A stretch of 64,000 nt of DNA, from assembly GCA_905178155.1 (NCBI GenBank), contig CAJINV010000002.1, forward strand, positions 270,354 to 334,353. Direction: 5' to 3'. The notes beneath the pieces were generated by a model. It made no database searches. It was given only the letters and a program-made list of their open reading frames with translations, and was not told the DNA's origin. This document shows, one piece after another, positions 5,637-25,611 of this stretch. A program made the translations under genes and the position numbers. This DNA is from Amoebophrya sp. A120. Lineage: Eukaryota; Protista; Dinoflagellata. Each line of letters starts with the position of its first letter. The first letter of the stretch is position 1.

Positions 5637-5731
5637 GAATCTATCCTTCAGTGAAGGATAGATTCCTCCATCCTTCAGCGTAGCAGATAGACTCCCAGAT
5701 GGTGAAGTTCACCATCTGGGAGTCTATCTGC
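5637..5731. repeat. Two perfect palindromes (14-bp and 24-bp arms, 1-nt loops)
   Basis: Arms 5637-5650/5652-5665 and 5683-5706/5708-5731. Confidence 0.95.
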
Positions 5732-5872
5732 ATCGTTCCTGTGCAACAGCATTACTACTACTACTACTACTACTGTCTGCTTAATCCGGTTATTAGTCTA
5801 ATAGGCTTTCTTTAACTTAAGGCTATATTCGGATGCGCAGCGTGACACTATTTCCTGGTGCCCGGGCGGGCG

Positions 5873-8800
5873 TTACTGGCCGGGGGGCAGGTCGTCGGCA
5901 ACCCATATCTTAGTACTGCTGTCTTGTCTAAAAATGGAGCCATAGACCGTCGCCTCCTCCTTTCCCGCGTTCTCACAGAAAAAGAAGCTACTGACTCGGA
6001 ACTGCAGCTCTTTGCCGTCGTCCGTTTTTACGAAGAAGCTGTACTTGGACCGTGGTCGCTTTGTCCACACTTTCCCGCTAATTCGCTGCAGCGTTTCCCT
6101 GTTCCTCTCTTCCTGTTCCTCTCGCTGCTGTTCTAGTCTTCGTCGTCTCTCTTCTTCCATCGCTGTCCGCTTTTTGCTTTTTGGCGCGCCTGCCTTTGCG
6201 CCTTTTGGCTTTTTCGGTGTCTTTACGCGCCTGGCTGCGTCTATTGTGGCCCGGATTGCGATTCCCGTCGGCTTTGTTTCTTTGATTACTTCCAGCGGTA
6301 TTGCGTAGTAGTCTAAGTCCTCCTGCGCTTGTCTCCCCCAGGGAGTCTTGTGTTTTATTTTTGCCTCGATGCGCGCAAAAGACCCTTCGTTTTCGTCTCC
6401 CCGACGGGCGTGGGCAATCCACGCGACCCGCTTCGCGCGGATCTCGTCCTCGATAGGCTGCACCCCGAGCTCGTGGCAGAGCTCGAGCCTGCTTTTTCCT
6501 ATCCTTCGTTACGGAAGTGGCCCCCGAGGATTTCGCGAAGAGCTGAGTCTTGGAACCGCCGCAGCGCGGCGTCCTGCGCTGTTGTGGTGGTCCACGTCTC
6601 CGCGTTGTACAACGCTATGCTCAAACTCAACGCCCGATAGAGGTCGGACTTGAGCCTGGTCGGCAGTGTGGCGTCGCGCCACACCGGGGCTAGTTGTTTT
6701 ACGACCCCGGCGGCAATTGCGCACCGCCGTGTCGTTTCTCCCTCTGTGCTGCCGTCCCGCCCGACTTCTGTCCCTAGGTATCTGAAGCAGCCCACTATCT
6801 CCACCGCCCCGCCATTGTACTCGAAGGGCGGGACGCTTTCCGGCGCCAAGGCTTTCGCCTTTTGCTTTTTCTTCTCTTCCACCATGCGGCTGACCCGCAG
6901 GGTTCTGAGTTCTTTCAGCGTTTTTACTGGGCGGCAAAAGCCGGTGGCTTGGTGGAATTGCAGCGCCGTCTCGTCTGCCAAGATGCCGCCACACCGCTCA
7001 CACACAAACTTGTTTTTCTCCTCCAGCACGTACTTCCTGTGGCCCAACATTGTTGTTCTCATGCTTTCCCCATTGTGTGTGCGCGCCCACCCGGACTGCT
7101 TGCATGATAAAACTTCTATACCCAGGCTCGGGTCGTCCCACACGAGAAAATGTGTGGGAGCTAGATCGCCGGATGCATCCCGCGGCGCTGGTAGCTGCTG
7201 TATTTCGGCAGCCCACTCTGAACACCAGTCCGCCCCGCTCCAGTCGATCAGCCACCCCTCTGCTTCGTCTACTACTAATCTTTCCATTACTGCCTCTGGA
7301 TTTTTCCGCTTCTCCACTTCCGGGTTGACCGCCATGACCTTCGTCTTTTTCACGTTCAACTCCAGGCCGACGAAGCGGCACGCAGCCGCCAATTCGCGGA
7401 GCGCAAACTCCGCCGCCGCCCTGCTGGCCTCTTTGACGACGAGGTCGTCGACGAACCCCAACCAGGTCAGGGCGTGTGCCCACGCCTCGTCTTCGGTCCA
7501 CCCGTACTCTTCCGCCATCGTCTTGGCGAGTTGTCGTATCGCCCAATCCAGGCATAACGCAAAAAGGAGCGGGCTCAGGCCGCTCCCTTGCCTGATCCCG
7601 CTCTTTTGCTTGAACGCTGGGGCGCTCTTGTTGTCGCCCAGTCGTGTGACTACCTGCGCGCACTTTTGGTACATGTTTTGCACCACTTTGCAGACATTTT
7701 CTGGTAGGCCCTGCTTCCTCAAAATGGGGAACAAGACCGACCACGCGAGGCTATCGAAAGCTTTCTGGAAGTCTATAAACGTGTAGTAGGCCCGGCGCCC
7801 CTCCCTGTTGTTCTTCTCTATGTCCCGCAACAACTGGAAGACTGCGTGCCGGCAGGACAGCCCGCGGCGGCAGCCCTTCTGCTTTGGGCTCATGTGCTTG
7901 TTGGCCTCGTCTTCGATCCGCCGCAGGATTACCAAGCAAGCCGAGCAACTTCTCGCCCAGGGTTATCAGGGCTATGGGTCGGTAGTTCTTCGGGTCCCGC
8001 TTCACCCCGTCCTTGTGAAGCATCGCCACTACCGCCTCACCCCATTCAGGGGGAATGTCGTCCCCTCTGAATATGCGGCGCACTAGGGACACTAGTACGG
8101 CCTGCGCCGTCGGGCACTCACGTGCGAATTCCGCCGGGATTGGGCCTGCAAAGGCCTTGCCCCGCTTCAGCTCTCGGAGCGCGGCAACAATTTCGGCTTC
8201 GGTCGGAATTTCGTCCAAGCCGCTGCGCCATGCTTTCGCCGTCTCGTCTTTTTCTAGTTCTGCCGCGCACCTTTTCCACGTTTTTGTTTGCTGGACGTTG
8301 GGTGGTGCTGTTGGTCTCTCCGTCCCGAACACGCCCCCCCAGAATTCCGTCCAGGCTTCTGGGGGGCCGGGCAGTTCCTGCGGTCTCTGTCTCCCCCGCC
8401 CTGCGAGCTGGCGCACTGTTTCATACACCATTTTCGTATTGCCGCATTGGTCTGCCCGCCTGAGAGATTCTACTTTGTCTGCCACCCATGCTAATCGGTC
8501 GCGTTTCACCAACTTATTGATCTCCCTGGTTAGCCCGGTCACCTTCTTCTTTTGCTGCTTCGCCCGTCTTCGCTCTTCGGTCTTCCCCCAGGTTTCTGCC
8601 GTGATCCACGGCTTGCGCGGTCCGGCCGGGGTCAGATTGTTCAGCTTGTCGAGGGTCGTGCGGGGGTCTTTCTGAAATTGCGACCAAAAGGCCGCCGCGC
8701 TTGTTTCCCCCTCTTCTATTTGCGCGATGGCTTCCGGGGTGTATTTTGTTGCTAGTAAGTTGTCTGCTGCCTGTGCTTTCTCCTTGCTCCTGATGATCTG

Positions 8801-9826
8801 GGGGGGGATCTTCCTCACCACCGGTTGCTTTATTGCTCCCAGCTTCATCTCCACCACCACTAGGCAGTGGTCGCCCTGCACTGCAGTTCCCCGCACTACA
8901 CGCAGTTTTTCGAAAAGGCCCTTGTCTCGAAACGAGACCAAAAACCTATCATATTCGCGCAGCCTCCGCGCGCCCTCCGACTTCCATTCCCCCTCAAAGG
9001 TGTGCCGCTGGCTCCATTTCTTTCTTTGGAGGCTCGAAAGGTCGACCAGGTGGTTTGCCGCTGCCAGGGCGTGCAGCCTTTCGCGATTATCCGAGCGGAG
9101 AACAAAATCGCTGGTAAGCCCACATCTTCCAACTACATAGCTTAAGCCTGCGTCTGCAAGCTCCGTCTCTGGGCCCCCCAATTCACAGTTGTGATCGCCG
9201 CCAAGGATGGCGACGTCGTATCTACTGTGTCGCTGCATCTCCTCCCGCGCCAGGTCGTAGTAGTTCTGCTTTGCCTCTGTTGCTGCTGTGTTGGTGGGGG
9301 CGTACACACTGTAAATGTGCACTCTCTTCCCGAAGCCGCCCCGGATCGAAACCCGGACCAACCTCGCCTGCTGTGTGTCGCTGACGTCCTCGACTTTTAT
9401 TCCCGATCTGATCACTATTACGGTGCCTCCTACCGGTGCCCCGCTTGAATTCGACGTCGCTCCCCCACCATACGCTCTGCATCCGCCCGGCCATTGTTCT
9501 CCCACAAGCCACTCGCGAGTTTTTGTTTCTTGTAGCAGCACTACATCCAGCTTCTGCCGCTTCGCGTCGTCCACGAGCGAAAGAAGCTGCACCGACCAAA
9601 CGTCGCGACCTTCGTCGCGTTTCCCAAGCGTCCTGACGTTAAATGTGCCCAGCCTTATCCTCTTTGTTGTTTTGGTTTTCGTTTTCGCCGTCGTCCGCCA
9701 GTCTCGGGCGGGAGCTTCCCATCCGGTGCTCTTGGCACTGCTGCCGCTGCTGGGGAGCTCCCCCTGCAGGGGAGCTGACTGCGCGGCGTTTGTGTGGTTT
9801 CTCGGTGGTTGTTTTTCGTGGTCCAT
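5873..9826 (-). pseudogene. LINE ORF2 (APE endonuclease + reverse transcriptase) with two frameshifts (~7935, ~6500)
   Basis: GTFNVR, LQETK, YAPT, GGDHN, GDH; NYRPIAL, FIDFQKAFDS, GIRQGSGLSPLLF, FVDD, FRYLG, LYNAETW, RVAWIAHARR, spread over three frames. Confidence 0.92.
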
Positions 9827-10606
9827 CTTGAGTCGGGTCGTAGTTGTTGTTGTTCCGCTCCGCTTGAGCCACTTCCCGCTTGAGCCGCACTCCTTGAGCC
9901 AACTCTCGAAGCAGGTGTAGCTTCTCTCGAGCAAGAAAAAACGCTCTCTCCGCCTGATGCAACCCGACGCTTCCCGCCGACCGCTCAGTGCTCTTCCCTC
10001 CGCCCGCTCAACGTCCAGAAGTTTCTCTCTGCCCCGCTTCCGGCGGCAAGGAAAAATCTAGATAGATTAAAAAATTACTTCTTCTGTCGCGTATAGTACT
10101 GATGCTAATAGCTTCGAATTCCCGATCGAACGCAAATTCTTCTTTCGTCACTGTTAAAAACCGCGCCCGGGGGACGCTCTTACTTCATTCGCGGATAGTG
10201 TCACAATTAAGCCTGCAATAAGAACAAACGGATTGGCGATCCGATTGTCTGAATGACGCGCCTTCTGTGCGTCGTGCTCACAAGTCAAGGCTTGTGTGCG
10301 CCATTATTCCGCTCCACGTTCAGCTATCTTCCTTCAGAGTAAAAACCGGCAAAGTGCCGGGACTTCTTGGTTGCAAATGCAAGGGCTGACCCGCTGGGCC
10401 CGCCCTGGGATAATCTTCGTCGCTCGTTGGTTCGGTCTCTTGGTTAATTTCGGTCGGGACAGATGAAAACGATCTTGCTCTACGCCATGGCTATAACAAC
10501 AGCCGCGGCCTCGCTTACTCGCCCCACAGAGGTGTCGAATTTCTAATTTGCGTGCTCCGGAGAGAGAAGTACTCAGCAGAAGAAATGGCGATCTGCGCGG
10601 CGCAGA

Positions 10607-11725
10607 TCAACGTCGCCTCGAACCGCCGGCGATGATCCGCCTCGGCTTCTCCTCCGCTTTTTTCGTGGTGTTTGTGGCCCCGCCAGTGGTGCTGGTCCCG
10701 CTGCCACCACTGGTCGTCTTGTCTTTTTTGTTTTTCTTATTCGTACTCTTGCTCCTGGTCCGCTTATTCAATTTGTTCTCCTTGTTGCCCCCGGGATCTT
10801 CGGCTTCGGCGGGTGAGGGGGAAGACGTGTCTTCCTGCGCCCCGTTCTTGGGCCGCTTTGCGGACGGATCCGCTTTGTCACCCTCGCCCTCTTCGTCTCC
10901 TTCCTCGATCCCTTCCATCGCTTTCTTCTCGTCCTCTTCCGCCCGGTTCGTGATTTTTCGCTCTTTTTTCAGTGTGTCCTCCGGGTTGCGGACGATATGC
11001 TCCTTGACCTGCAGGGAGGTCAAGTGCTGCTTCGTGACGTTTCTCTTGCGGCTCTGCACCAAACTGCGCAGCTTCATCGTCTCACTGTTGGGCTTCAGCA
11101 TCACCTCAATCCACCCCGACTTGAAAACTGCAATGCTGGCGATAAAGTCCGGCTCGATGCGGCGAAAGGCTTGCGCCATCTCCTCCGCCAACCGGTCGCT
11201 CTTTTTCTCGTCTTCATCCCCGTATTCGTCCATTAGATCGACCAGCTGCAGCTTACCGTCGTCGTCCTCTTGCAGCTCCTGCACGTTTTCGCCCTCTATG
11301 ACTTTAGCGTGCGAAACTGCGTCGCCGACGGTCTCAATGAACTTCTCCTTCCACTTGTCGACTATGTCCGGGAATTTCATCTGCGAAATTGTGATGATCG
11401 AGGTGGAAGTCGAGTTCTTCGTGTGTCCCGGGGAGAAAGGCGGTCGCGCCGCCTGTACTGCACTACTACTGCTGGCAGCCGCGCCATTCTCGGCTTGTTC
11501 TGCGGCGCGTTTCTCCTCCTCGGCTCTTTCCTCCTTCCACTCAGCGAGAGGTAGCCAATCCACACCGTGGATGGACACAATGTTGCGAGCTTTCAAGACC
11601 GCAGTGTCGTACTGCGCGCGGGTGAAGGCCTTGGTCTGGGTCGGGGCAACGGCCGGCTGGTCGGCTTTGTTCTTTCCGCCGCCCTTCCTGTTCTTGCCCT
11701 TGCCCTTCTTTTCTGGTTTGGCCAT
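10607..11725 (-). CDS. LINE ORF1-position protein (372 aa, basic termini)
   Basis: Intact ORF inside the TSD-bounded element, upstream of ORF2; no domain recognised. Confidence 0.8.
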   Translation of the reverse strand: MAKPEKKGKGKNRKGGGKNKADQPAVAPTQTKAFTRAQYDTAVLKARNIVSIHGVDWLPLAEWKEERAEEEKRAAEQAENGAAASSSSAVQAARPPFSPGHTKNSTSTSIITISQMKFPDIVDKWKEKFIETVGDAVSHAKVIEGENVQELQEDDDGKLQLVDLMDEYGDEDEKKSDRLAEEMAQAFRRIEPDFIASIAVFKSGWIEVMLKPNSETMKLRSLVQSRKRNVTKQHLTSLQVKEHIVRNPEDTLKKERKITNRAEEDEKKAMEGIEEGDEEGEGDKADPSAKRPKNGAQEDTSSPSPAEAEDPGGNKENKLNKRTRSKSTNKKNKKDKTTSGGSGTSTTGGATNTTKKAEEKPRRIIAGGSRRR

Positions 11726-12128
11726 TTTGAGACGTTTGTGCGTTTCTTACGATGATGCTTCTTATGGTGCAGAAGCGAAATAAAGTTGCAGTGTGTGTGA
11801 GCGTTGGGGTGCAGTGTAGGTCTAAATGTGTCTTACTTCGGTAAAAATTGGTCGCAGTTCAAGAGAGGCACAGATGCGTAAGAACGGTCTGACTATAATT
11901 CTTCTACTAGGGCTCTTGGCGAGGCTTAGGCTGAGCGTTTTATTTTTTCATCGTGCAACTTTTGTATCTTTGTGGTCTTTGGATCTTAAAGCTTTTGGAT
12001 TGTGTTCCTACTGATTCAAGTTGTCAATAAAATTGCAGCTTCTACACTAGTCTATCCTTCACGGGGTCGCTGTCGTGATAGTGAACTGCTCAGCGGGCCC
12101 CCCCCGGAGGGGTTGGTATATTAAGGAC

Positions 12129-12142
12129 CTTGAGCCAAAATG
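12129..12142 (-). other. Dinoflagellate spliced-leader (DinoSL) relic CATTTTGGCTCAAG
   Basis: 14-nt exact match to the 3' end of DCCGTAGCCATTTTGGCTCAAG, located at the LINE 5' junction. Confidence 0.9.
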
Positions 12143-12213
12143 CAACAGCATTGAATATACAGAATACTTCGAGTGCTACATCTACATCTAATCGCCGGAT
12201 GATATCTGCTTTA

Positions 12214-15491: not shown

Positions 15492-18400
15492 TCATTGCAA
15501 AACTTCAACACCATAGTCCACCACGTCCCCCACAGAGAACCCGGTCTCCTCCGTATCCTATGTAAAAACGTCCCCACCCCATAGTCACGATGGGGAATCG
15601 GCTAGACAAGTCCACAAGTTTTGGCTGTTTTGCATGACAAATTTGGACTCGGAGTGTAGTGCCGTTTCTTTGAGGTAGTTCAGCAGCATCACAGATCTAG
15701 TATTCATATCATGCTGATTGGCGCATTATAAATTCCAAAACACGTCCAGAGAATGCTTCTCATGGGGCTCCGCATGACAAACATTTAGAGCATGCAGATT
15801 TGCATGACAACGCTGGGGTGCGGACGTTTTTACACAGGATACTCCGCAAACCTGGGATCCGGCTTCGTCGACAGAAAACGCAGCCGGTCCGGCCGGAGTA
15901 TTGCGAATTCTGATTTACGTTGGGCGGCGGCACTTCTTCTTGGGGACTGCTTCTGTTCTTGTGGTCCTTGTTGATGAAAAGGTTGTGAAGCAGGGTCGTG
16001 ACGACCACCTTCTGGTTCTGTCCGCCCCACTTCTTGATCCTGCTCTGGGGACCAGTTGTTGCTACGTCCAGCAGGTTATGAACTTCAAAATCATCGCACT
16101 AGGACTAGTTTAAATTGCAATACAAATTAGCTCAGCGTGAGAAATAAACTTTGTAATGCGGATCTACCTTAAAAAAAGATTTTTATATGCGTAAAAGCAA
16201 TTAGCACAAGTACGATACTTTTGCACAGGATACAGGAGACACAGGTGAAGAGAAGGTCCTCATTATTGTTGACAAGCCTGCCAGCACTTCCCTATCCCCG
16301 CTGGCTCTTTCGTCTTGACACGGCTCCTGCTCGAGAATAATGGTAGTCCCGAACGTATCCTGAGTAAAAACGTACCCACACCAGAGTCAGGATGAGGATT
16401 TTGCAACACAAACCTAGGAGTTTTGTGAGTCACGCATGACATAAACAGACTGCGCTACTGCGGGCGGGACATTGTGTATCAGGTGAATTGATCAACCCGA
16501 AGACGCCGCCCCCCCCGGGCCCTATGGACCAGGCACTCCCCACTATACTCCTCACACAAAACGCCACCAATACAACTGTAGGACATAGCCAACCACCCCG
16601 GAGCACCAGCACCAGCAACGGGGGCGGAAACGGCCCCACCCACTTCACATTCCTATCTGTGAGTCACGCATGACAAGTTGCACTATGCAGCTTAGTGCAG
16701 GTTAGCAAGTGCAGCCGCGTCACAGATTCATCTGCTCATCCTGTTCACAGCATCACAAATTCCAAAACACGATTGGAAATGGGTCTCATGGGGATGCGCA
16801 TTACAAGTCTTCCTGTCTTTGCGAATCTGCATTACAACTCTGGTGTGGGTACGTTTTTACTCAGGATAGAACGAGTCGCTGTCTGTTCCTGTTGTCGGAG
16901 GCACAGCATGATCTCCTTGGTGCTGTACTACAGATCCGGCTGCACGAGGAGCCGCAGAAGATGACGAAGTAAAAGCGGCTCCTGCAGTACTACCGCTACT
17001 TGCTTGCTCTGGTGCCGCTCTACTAACTGCCAAGTCGGTTGTTCTCGAAGTCGGGAAACAAACATCTTCCAATGGAGTGGCGAAATAACTGTTAGCTGTG
17101 CTGTAGAAAACGCTCGGAACAGAGAATGCTGTCGTGCTCTGCTCTTGCCGTCCTCCTTGCTCTGCAGTTAGTAAATTTTCTCCTCTCTTCTGCAGAAAAT
17201 CGTGCGCTTCGTGAAGAGGACCGGCGGAATTTGATGCACTATGTTGGCCAAATCTAGTAGTAGTACAACTCCGGTCCTCCCCCATATAATCTGTCCACTG
17301 GTACACCGCCGTTGCCGAAGCCGGGGGCGTGCGTAAAGGAGAACCAGCTTGATGATCATCCTCGGGGGCACTACTTGGAGGTGCCGCAACGGCAACACCT
17401 CGTCCCACTGGCCCCTGCGATGAACAAGGGAACGAGAAGACACAACCTTCTTGCCCTGGTGCTGTTGACGGTGCTGTAGTAGGATGGGCAAAAACTTCTG
17501 TAGTACTTCCGTCTACCGCCACGGCTGGCTGTTCGTGCTGGTTCAAAAATAGCTCTTGCGCGTAGAAGAAGTTGCTCTGCGGGTCGTGTGCCGGGCGCGC
17601 TTCTTGTTGTGTGTCACAATGATGCCAAAAAGTTTCAGAAGGTTGCGGCATCACATATGGCCTGCTCAAAAGTTACAATCTCAAATGTTACAATAGAGCC
17701 TGGGTTTTGTGCTGCATGATGAGCATAACAGACGCGCACGGCGTTCCACGTTTTGCAATACAAATTTCGCCAGATTCTAGTGCGGATTGGGGCTCCAGAG
17801 CTTGTCATGCGCAATCCTGTGGGAGCAGTAGAGTAGATCATGCACTTCTTGCATCACAGATTTTCATATTCTGTTGTAACGTTTGAGATTGTAACAGCTG
17901 AGCAGGTCATATTACAACGCCGCCCACGGGAAGACAGGCAACGCTCCCCGCCGGGAAAAGTGCAAAATTGTTACAGCTGTACGTCGCAAGAGGAAGAGCG
18001 GCAGTGGCTCCAGGTGCAGCTGCGATTGTGCTTCTTGCTCCGATCATTCTTGGGTCGCTGGAGGTGCACTGGAAGTAGTCCGCAGCCGCAGCTGGTTGGT
18101 GTAGAAATCTGTTTGCACAACCGCGCTCCTGTGCTGACGTAATATTAGTCGATGAATCATTGCACTGAAAATACTGCGGAAGTGGTGGGTTTCTGCGGTC
18201 GCCCGTCCGAGGAGCTTGCTGTCGTGCGGTGTTGCGGTTGTGATAGGGCCTTTGAGGTGGGGTTGTTGCGTGTTTTCTAGACTGCGGATGATGGTTTTTC
18301 CACTGTCGCGGACCGGTGGAGTAGGCATGCCAATCTGGTGGAACTGGATCCGCTGGTGGCACTTCGGAAATAGACCGGGGATGCGTAGTTATAGTTTGTT

Positions 18401-24303: not shown

Positions 24304-25611
24304 CTACTTGCCCGACGAATACATCGAAGTGCAGCCAAGGTCTTCGAACCTGCTGCCGTGCGACAGCGGTTCGCTAAATTTCGGCCCTCTTGCTACTTTT
24401 TTCTTCCCGCCCAGTTTCGCTATTTCTGCTATCGCCGGTGAGAGTCCGCGCTGTTCGAAGAAGTCCTCCGCATCAGCGCAAACCCGCTCGGCGAATGCCT
24501 GCCTATCCTTCCTCTTGACCCATTTCATCAGTTTGAGGATTTCAAGGGCTTCTGCTTTTTCCCCAGCCGCCAGAAGCCGGCATCTTTCCTGCCAGAGGTC
24601 CGTGAACTCGACCGAGATCCACGGCTTCCGGTCTGTTTTGGATTTTTCGAAGACTTTGGTGCCCGCCTCCCGCAGGCTGTTTTGCAAGGTGTCGCCCTTC
24701 TGTAGTCCTTTTTCAAATTCAGAATTGAAGAAGTTTTTTTCGTCCAACGTAGCTGCTTTCGCGGTAGGAATGCGGGGTGTGGGCTTGTTTTTCTTCTTCC
24801 TCCCGAACCACTGAAGGTCGCGCTGGCTTACTTTCACCACCACCAGGCGGTGATCAAATTTACTTTTTTCGGAGGGGTCCAGTGCTTTGCAGTCCTTTAT
24901 CGCGTTTTTGAAGCCCCTGGGCGCGATGGCGTGGTCGATTTGATGGTAGCCCCGGTGCCCAAGATTGAGCGTCTTGTGCCCCGGGTGCCGCCATGTTGCG
25001 TAGCTGCGGAAGCTGTGCCGGAAGTATGACGCCAAGCTGCAGGCGTTGTTTTCTTGAAGGAAACCTTCTAGCAGGGGGGTGTTGCGATTTGCGATTTCGT
25101 TTCGGCCCCAAGGGCCCGCGAAGTCCGTCCGGAGCGGGAGGCGGGCATTGAAATCGCCCAGGAGGAGGCACTTTGTTGCTGGGGCGACGGTCGCGCTGAG
25201 CTGCGCGTAGAATTCCAGTTTTTGCGTTTCGTCTTTGTCGTCCGTGGGGGCGTAGCAACATATCACCCGGAACGGCCTGCCGGCCTTGATTTTGAAGTCG
25301 ACGTAGACTATTCGCGGACTGACTTTCCGCCAATCCACGACCTGCCCGGGGAATTTGTTGCTCACTGCTATCGCTACCCCCGCGTTGCATTTTTGCCCCC
25401 CTGCGTGGTAAATTTTCCAGTCTCCTGCTGTCTCCTCCCCCGTTTTTGTTCCCTTTGTCTCCGCGATCGCAAGACAAAGGATCCCGTGTAGTTGTGCTTC
25501 CAGTAGTATGCTCTTCTTTTTTACGTCGTCCTTGGCTTTCAACCCCAAGCCATTTACATTCCAGGTTCCAAACACAAGGTCAAGGAGGCGTTTCTTTTGA
25601 ACAGCAGCCAT
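24304..25611 (-). CDS. LINE-type APE endonuclease ORF with no RT
   Basis: GTWNVNG, IAETK, CYAPT, LLGDFNA, QIDH, FDHRLV; the ORF ends inside the flanking repeat. Confidence 0.88.
   Translation of the reverse strand: MAAVQKKRLLDLVFGTWNVNGLGLKAKDDVKKKSILLEAQLHGILCLAIAETKGTKTGEETAGDWKIYHAGGQKCNAGVAIAVSNKFPGQVVDWRKVSPRIVYVDFKIKAGRPFRVICCYAPTDDKDETQKLEFYAQLSATVAPATKCLLLGDFNARLPLRTDFAGPWGRNEIANRNTPLLEGFLQENNACSLASYFRHSFRSYATWRHPGHKTLNLGHRGYHQIDHAIAPRGFKNAIKDCKALDPSEKSKFDHRLVVVKVSQRDLQWFGRKKKNKPTPRIPTAKAATLDEKNFFNSEFEKGLQKGDTLQNSLREAGTKVFEKSKTDRKPWISVEFTDLWQERCRLLAAGEKAEALEILKLMKWVKRKDRQAFAERVCADAEDFFEQRGLSPAIAEIAKLGGKKKVARGPKFSEPLSHGSRFEDLGCTSMYSSGK

Follow-up and report, generated by a model that had tools for sequence, protein, structure and literature searches.

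A LINE headed by a spliced leader relic

The window, by which we mean the entire 64,000-nucleotide (64-kb) stretch of the Amoebophrya sp. A120 genome analysed here, carries on its minus strand a 6.4-kb LINE flanked by two copies of a 12-bp target-site duplication (TSD), and the positions of its parts are compiled in Table 1. In Pfam searches ORF2 matched a reverse transcriptase (RT; RVT_1, E 2.6e-26) and, N-terminal to it, an AP endonuclease (Exo_endo_phos, E 1.8e-8), the corresponding values in a sibling copy on contig C3 being 2.4e-29 and 3.8e-8, and the best PDB matches of the RT were L1 ORF2p (E ~1e-17) and R2. Possessing an RT, an AP endonuclease, a TSD together with a 3' tail and no LTRs, the element belongs to the APE-type non-LTR retrotransposons. 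No Pfam domains were found in ORF1 or in the neighbouring host ORFs. The LINE is full length, as the initial annotation had it, in that its first nucleotide is the same as that of the sibling; this copy is nonetheless defective, since ORF2 is split across three frames by breaks near 7940-7960 and near 6502-6508. Intact coding capacity is absent from it, which leaves its membership of the LINE family unaffected.

Table 1. Features of the LINE and its boundaries in the 64-kb window, in the 5' to 3' direction of the element.
Feature	Position	Strand	Basis
5' TSD copy, AATGCTGTTGCA	12141..12152	-	identical 12-mer at 3' end
SL relic, CATTTTGGCTCAAG (DinoSL positions 9-22)	12129..12142	-	14/14 match
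5' UTR, SL junction to ORF1 ATG, 403 nt	11726..12128	-	
Leader module: +1 G, TCCTTAATATACCAACCCC, G/C hairpin, GCTGAGC, ACAGCGACC	12065..12128	-	alignments
ORF1, 372 aa; 67% identity with the C3 sibling's ORF1	10607..11725	-	
Inter-ORF spacer, 780 nt	9827..10606	-	
T-rich tract, then AG at 9904-9903, upstream of the first motif	9943-9930	-	
TTGGCTCAAG, inter-ORF spacer	9902-9893	-	
GGCTCAAG, inter-ORF spacer	9886-9879	-	
GGCTCAAG, inter-ORF spacer	9870-9863	-	
CTCAAG adjoining the ORF2 ATG (9826), inter-ORF spacer	9832-9827	-	
ORF2 part 1, ATG at 9826, AP endonuclease (Exo_endo_phos)	7961..9826	-	Pfam; tblastn vs intact sibling ORF2 (frame 2)
ORF2 part 2, reverse transcriptase (RVT_1), other frame than part 1	6502..7935	-	Pfam and sibling comparison
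ORF2 part 3, C-terminal region, another frame again	5882..6508	-	sibling comparison
Tail CA(GTA)7, microsatellite, no poly(A)	5753..5775	-	
3' TSD copy, then CAGGAACG	5742..5753	-	

Two further features of the window were recorded. Positions 24304-25611 (minus strand) hold a fragment of a different LINE family (Exo_endo_phos, E 2.4e-7) with no tblastn similarity to ORF2 of the window LINE, and a few bases past the 3' TSD lie a perfect palindrome of 2 x 23 nt (5685-5731) and a second, shorter one (5637-5665), both unique in the genome.

We confirmed that the LINE is headed at its 5' end by part of the dinoflagellate spliced leader (SL, or DinoSL), the complete 22-nt form of which is DCCGTAGCCATTTTGGCTCAAG. 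On the minus strand the 5' junction reads ...TTC-AATGCTGTTGCA-TTTTGGCTCAAG-GTCCTTAATATACC..., and the 2 nt that the initial annotation took to be common to the SL and the 12-bp TSD can be read directly at 12141-12142, where CA forms both the last 2 nt of the TSD copy and the first 2 nt of the relic. The base 5' of the 14-mer is G here and C in the SL, so the match stops at this point, leaving 12 nt that are unambiguously insert-derived and a 2-nt microhomology shared with the TSD. At the opposite end the second TSD copy directly follows the tail and continues into CAGGAACG, not TTTTGG, from which it follows that the target before insertion possessed only the CA of the 14-mer. An empty target already containing the 14-mer (...TTGCATTTTGGCTCAAG), the case that the initial annotation had named as fatal to its reading, is contradicted by this 3' copy within the one genome available. 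The placement of SL bases at the exact 5' end of the LINE indicates that the LINE machinery itself took an RNA with the leader on it as the template for this element.

The exact SL 14-mer occurs once in the 64-kb window and 82 times in the 115.5-Mb genome (231 Mb counting both strands), where ~0.9 copies are expected and the reversed control gave 0; the full SL 21-mer is present in 51 copies in the assembly. A direct word of at least 12 nt was common to 150-nt windows drawn at random from the 64-kb stretch in 0.8% of trials, and the 12-nt word observed here coincides with both ends of the LINE, which are set independently by the sibling copy and by the tail. No empty paralogous site was found in the genome, both flanks of the LINE being single-copy.

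A sibling copy with the same first nucleotide

The C3 sibling (L049) is 81.6% identical to the window LINE across its whole length, with ORF1 and ORF2 open (1337-aa frame), a (CAGT)n tail and a TSD of 13 bp (AAACAGGACGGAG). Its first base is the identical G (GTCCTTAATATAAC...), and its SL sequence is limited to an AG that is common to the TSD and to the end of the SL. The family is low-copy and 5' ends are kept in these two copies only, giving n=2 for all orientation and 5'-end statistics. Alignment of the 5' ends of the copies, proposed in the initial annotation, shows a shared first G and not a shared SL, which extends beyond AG in the window copy only. With CA (SL positions 9-10) at the window junction and AG (SL positions 21-22) at the C3 junction, both 5' junctions overlap the SL by 2 nt, and these overlaps would fit the microhomology-assisted joining of two cDNAs that had extended into the SL. 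For the C3 copy taken alone, a transcript starting at +1 is possible.

The same SL-leader junction at other loci

The first ~75 nt of the LINE form a leader module whose general layout is R-TCCTTAATATACCAACCCC, a G/C hairpin, GCTGAGC and ACAGCGAC. We found only seven genomic copies of its core at no more than 2 mismatches, and in six of them the SL lies directly 5' of the same nucleotide, with 14 nt of the SL in the window copy and the complete SL at the other five loci. A diverged eighth copy (L058) also carries the complete SL, making seven SL-bearing copies out of eight, and a contig from a related genome (JACKZZ010005792.1; L084) contains a ~90% identical leader with the complete SL; this was the one real match among 32 returned by a metagenome scan for the leader, the other 31 being chance. 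The module is therefore common to the window LINE, the C3 sibling, L003-L007, L058 and L084, and at six non-LINE loci and the related-genome contig the complete SL is joined to it at the same nucleotide.

That SL-headed units of this type are real insertions can be seen at two loci (L047 and L048), where 1.3-1.4-kb non-coding sequences that start exactly with the SL, and have SL-plus-leader as their 5' end, interrupt copies of a terminal-inverted-repeat element. The window itself supplies the empty sites, at position 16659 for L047 and at 16827-16829 for L048, within an uninterrupted ~510-bp introner/MITE-like element with ~27-nt terminal inverted repeats (16356-16868). Neither insert has a poly(A) or a clear duplication. 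At a third locus (L046) the leader is present and the body matches another SL-headed repeat family.

The association of the SL with diverse bodies extends beyond this leader. The full SL also heads L044, an unrelated element whose 2070-aa ORF contains an RT, and the 51 full SL copies precede many different sequences, several of which are repeat families (the longer downstream survey, over about 9 kb, covered 8 SL sites). One constant SL placed ahead of many bodies is a signature of trans-splicing and not of a single gene, and is what would be expected if LINE mRNAs were processed like host mRNAs. The proposal of the initial annotation that the LINE RNA was SL-trans-spliced and copied nearly to its cap is thus well supported by comparison, the same junction being found at six loci and on the related-genome contig.

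RNAalifold and pair counts predict a stem in which the 3' end of the SL (GCUCA) pairs with UGAGC of the leader. In this predicted stem 97% of cells are paired, versus 47-58% when it is slid, with one covarying pair only; the A or G at +1 covaries with its predicted partner (A-U versus G-C) as a single event. A general complementarity to the SL among the leaders of SL-headed families was considered and rejected, the best match to the SL 3' octamer averaging 5.15/8 against a null of 5.2.

Two arrangements at related loci are recorded here. At L006:1460-1520 (C15:1716869) a 21-nt leader fragment (...CATATACCAACCCCTG) separates the target from the complete SL and its leader, as though the RT, once at the cap, had switched back to another leader. 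In addition, SL-headed copies of another repeat family (leader GAGCCTAACTTAGTAGAAACC...) have, 1.1-1.3 kb upstream of them, 3' fragments of the window LINE family or of a related one (L032, C7:80960-81657; L102, C11:2950256-2950845).

Orientation and the acceptor AG

Both full-length copies keep an AG at -2/-1, so that a further round of trans-splicing there would be feasible for each; tandem SLs at three loci (L020, L035 and L040) indicate that other acceptors are used too. The initial annotation had noted that the LINE is co-oriented with the neighbouring genes, and this is so for both copies (n=2) with respect to the long ORFs around them. Open frames of at least 150 aa outside the LINE amount to 6599 aa on the minus strand of the window, where the LINE lies, versus 3086 aa on the plus strand, and the C3 copy shares its orientation with an upstream phospholipase-B-like exon and a downstream LINE. 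That downstream LINE (L100:1478-6994; C3:8296167-8301683), ~1.4 kb away on the same strand, has a 1839-aa open frame with APE and RT, and no SL-like sequence was seen 5' of it in the stretch examined. The genes of this genome are arranged in long co-oriented blocks (PMC7789003). A promoter-less, read-through life cycle with a re-created AG acceptor is plausible on these sequence features.

Origin of the insertion

The window LINE is probably a full-length, now defective copy of a low-copy APE-type LINE that was inserted by target-primed reverse transcription (TPRT) from a LINE RNA already carrying the SL. The template would have been a LINE RNA with the host 22-nt SL joined to its first nucleotide (the G at 12128), acquired by ordinary trans-splicing at the AG immediately upstream of +1, in which case transcription of the source copy began at a point 5' of the element. 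Reverse transcription would then have entered the SL and halted 8-10 nt short of the cap, and the 5' junction would have been sealed on the 2-nt microhomology (CA). We infer that trans-splicing, rather than another joining route, made the SL-leader junction; transcription of the source copy was presumably by host read-through, and the retained AG may be used again in the next cycle.

Other explanations of the SL sequence have to be set against this one. Chance resemblance, or an SL relic that already lay in the target beside the landing site, has next to no probability: the 14-mer did turn up in a single one of 100 dinucleotide-shuffled versions of the window, but its 82 occurrences across both strands (231 Mb) against none in the reversed control, a match at the exact element boundary, in the orientation of the element and inside the TSD, and a 3' TSD copy without the 14-mer leave it little room. 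Somewhat greater weight, although still improbable, can be given to the idea that the LINE has a start site of its own at the G at +1, that its RNA is normally unspliced and that the SL piece was added secondarily, for instance through a change of template to a free SL exon or to the 5' end of another SL-mRNA. The promoter would in that case be internal to the leader, as is Pr77 in trypanosomatid LINEs, or would be the TTT(T/G) motif of the relic. The C3 sibling, which begins exactly at +1 without an unambiguous SL base, is compatible with such a start site, as are the parallel with Pr77 of a ~75-nt 5' module common to the LINE and to non-autonomous elements (PMC1874656, PMC8190864) and the proposal by Song et al. 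(2017, PMC5585692) of a TTT(T/G) core promoter provided by SL relics. What tells against it is recurrence, in that the SL is found at exactly the same junction in 7/8 independent leader copies, whereas a rare secondary event would not recur so often. Moreover, for an SL to be joined at +1 an AG and an outron must lie 5' of that base, so that transcripts would begin outside the element, and the SL bases overlapped at both 5' junctions (CA and AG) are expected if both cDNAs ran into the SL.

It is also conceivable that the 5' end came from an SL RNA gene or from unspliced SL RNA, either through capture of an SL RNA intron by the LINE lineage or through a template switch of the RT from the LINE RNA to SL RNA (compare U6/L1 chimeras). 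The GT that follows the SL in the window copy, taken in the initial annotation as a possible sign of this, points in that direction, as do the predicted pairing of the SL 3' end with the leader, which resembles that of SL exons with their introns, and the presence of the ~95-nt SL-plus-leader module before different bodies. All six SL-bearing relatives, however, read AT at the junction, with A in place of this G, which counts against the idea. Genome-wide, GT comes directly after the SL 3' end at nine sites, with the continuation GTCC at the window LINE only, and a stand-alone SL-GTCC gene is absent from the nine. The other eight are L037, a related repeat family (L050, L053 and L055), three SL-RNA-like sites (L051, L052 and L056) and L054. 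Two kinds of these are candidate SL RNA gene-like units: no full SL 21-mer except that of L037 (C11:2800777, minus strand) continues into GT (GTACCATATCG...), and a CCCTTTTCACCC block is repeated on both sides of it; in L051, L052 and L056 (C6:190535, C6:201172 and C223) a variant exon (AACGTAGCC...) runs into GTTGAGC, a sequence able to pair with the end of that exon. At L051 this reads GCTCAAG followed by GTTGAGC, a point in favour of a link with SL RNA.

Comparison of the leader with the genome's SL RNA-like genes, another proposal of the initial annotation, yielded nothing in favour of such a link, as its similarity to the introns of the candidates (L037, L050 type and L051 type) was no better than that of shuffles, and a search of Rfam returned no relevant match. 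The window LINE holds 14 nt of the 22-nt exon (12-14, depending on how the shared CA is counted) and not the complete exon, GT and intron of an SL RNA gene, and the exon is missing from the C3 sibling, in which the leader is present. With unrelated introns in the candidate genes and a GT that amounts to an A/G polymorphism, an SL-RNA-gene origin of this 5' end is unlikely, and an origin from SL RNA in the wider sense deserves less credence still than an own start site at +1. An ancient derivation of the leader from SL RNA is conceivable in view of the predicted pairing. Insertion from an RNA that had been trans-spliced remains the reading we prefer.

SL-like motifs ahead of ORF2

The inter-ORF spacer contains three or four motifs resembling the SL 3' end before the ORF2 ATG (Table 1), and these are kept in both full-length copies (L049:2500-2600 in C3). 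All five GGCTCAAG octamers in the 64-kb window are on the sense strand of the LINE, where 0.1 would be expected, and across the 573 kb examined the only other clusters of this kind were those of true tandem SL relics. A relative with 62% identity (L101) lacks the full array, and in L102 one homologous motif is found. A search for SL-headed retrocopies of ORF2 only (SL end followed by ATGGAC) gave just two extra matches, both unrelated and due to chance and equal in number to the reversed control. The motifs could be an internal array of SL relics, or a signal for a second trans-splice site that would give ORF2 an mRNA of its own; given the absence of the array from the 62%-identical relative, we treat them as a lead.

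Although speculative, the LINE family might be viewed as a miniature operon that depends wholly on host SL trans-splicing. It would be promoter-less and reside in a block of co-oriented host genes, with each copy carrying the AG by way of an SL relic or of microhomology, with a second acceptor in the spacer providing a leader-capped ORF2 mRNA, and with the ~75-nt leader, predicted to pair with the 3' end of the SL and common to non-autonomous retroposons, acting as a portable cis-signal. We consider this full scheme doubtful as it stands, with perhaps a minor share of the probability.

Comparison with known systems

Retrocopies bearing DinoSL relics were reportedly described by Slamovits and Keeling in 2008 as products of 'mRNA recycling'. 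The window LINE resembles such retrocopies (Song et al. 2017, PMC5585692) in that a DNA-encoded, 5'-truncated piece of DinoSL heads a retro-copied transcript, and here too the SL is situated at the exact 5' end and is absent from the target. It differs from them in that the tagged RNA is that of an autonomous LINE with a classical TSD and a microsatellite tail, which ties the SL-capped template directly to LINE TPRT, and in that no tandem arrangement of SL plus relic exists at the window locus. The literature searched leaves open the enzyme behind dinoflagellate retrocopies or, in one review, favours copia (PMC6050394), and for relic-bearing genes it gives only a GO enrichment for 'RNA-dependent DNA replication'. 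In the literature that we searched on SL relics no SL-headed LINE is described. Farhat et al. reported a single complete DinoSL-like sequence per Amoebophrya genome, whereas this assembly contains 51.

Pr77 of the trypanosomatid L1Tc/ingi, NARTc/RIME, SIDER and DIRE elements is an internal promoter that gives rise to unspliced transcripts (PMC1874656, PMC8190864). As with the leader described here, it is a sequence of ~75-77 nt at the extreme 5' end that is common to an autonomous LINE and to non-autonomous retroposons, in a host that trans-splices its mRNAs. The module in Amoebophrya, in contrast, is preceded by the SL in seven of its eight copies, so that its first base would be a trans-splice junction, and the likeness drawn here is one of layout.

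Human L1 (ORF2p structures 8c8j and 8sxt) shares with the window LINE an ORF1 and an APE-RT ORF2, a TSD, microhomology at the 5' junction and 5'-truncated relatives; the window LINE departs from it in having a microsatellite tail in place of poly(A), a 780-nt inter-ORF spacer with SL-like motifs and no sign of an internal promoter in the 5' UTR. LINEs that insert in the exons of SL RNA genes, use a restriction-like endonuclease and borrow the SL promoter are known from trypanosomatids (SLACS, CZAR and CRE) and nematodes (NeSL-1), and in these, as here, a LINE is physically tied to SL sequence on its 5' side. Assignment of the window LINE to the SL-gene-specific type (SLACS/CZAR/NeSL) was rejected on account of its AP endonuclease, its unique non-SL flanks and the position of the SL piece inside the TSD.

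Significance

This locus contributes a TSD- and tail-bounded LINE with a truncated SL, an SL-less sibling starting from the same base, a leader shared with other elements, and the motifs between its ORFs. Dinoflagellate genomes are full of retro-copied genes with SL relics, and the RT responsible is left open in the literature searched; an SL on a LINE with a textbook TSD and tail indicates that LINE TPRT copies leader-capped RNAs in this lineage. Where polycistron-like transcription is combined with universal trans-splicing, a retrotransposon may dispense with a promoter altogether, and the leader would set where its RNA begins and might serve in the expression of ORF2 as well.
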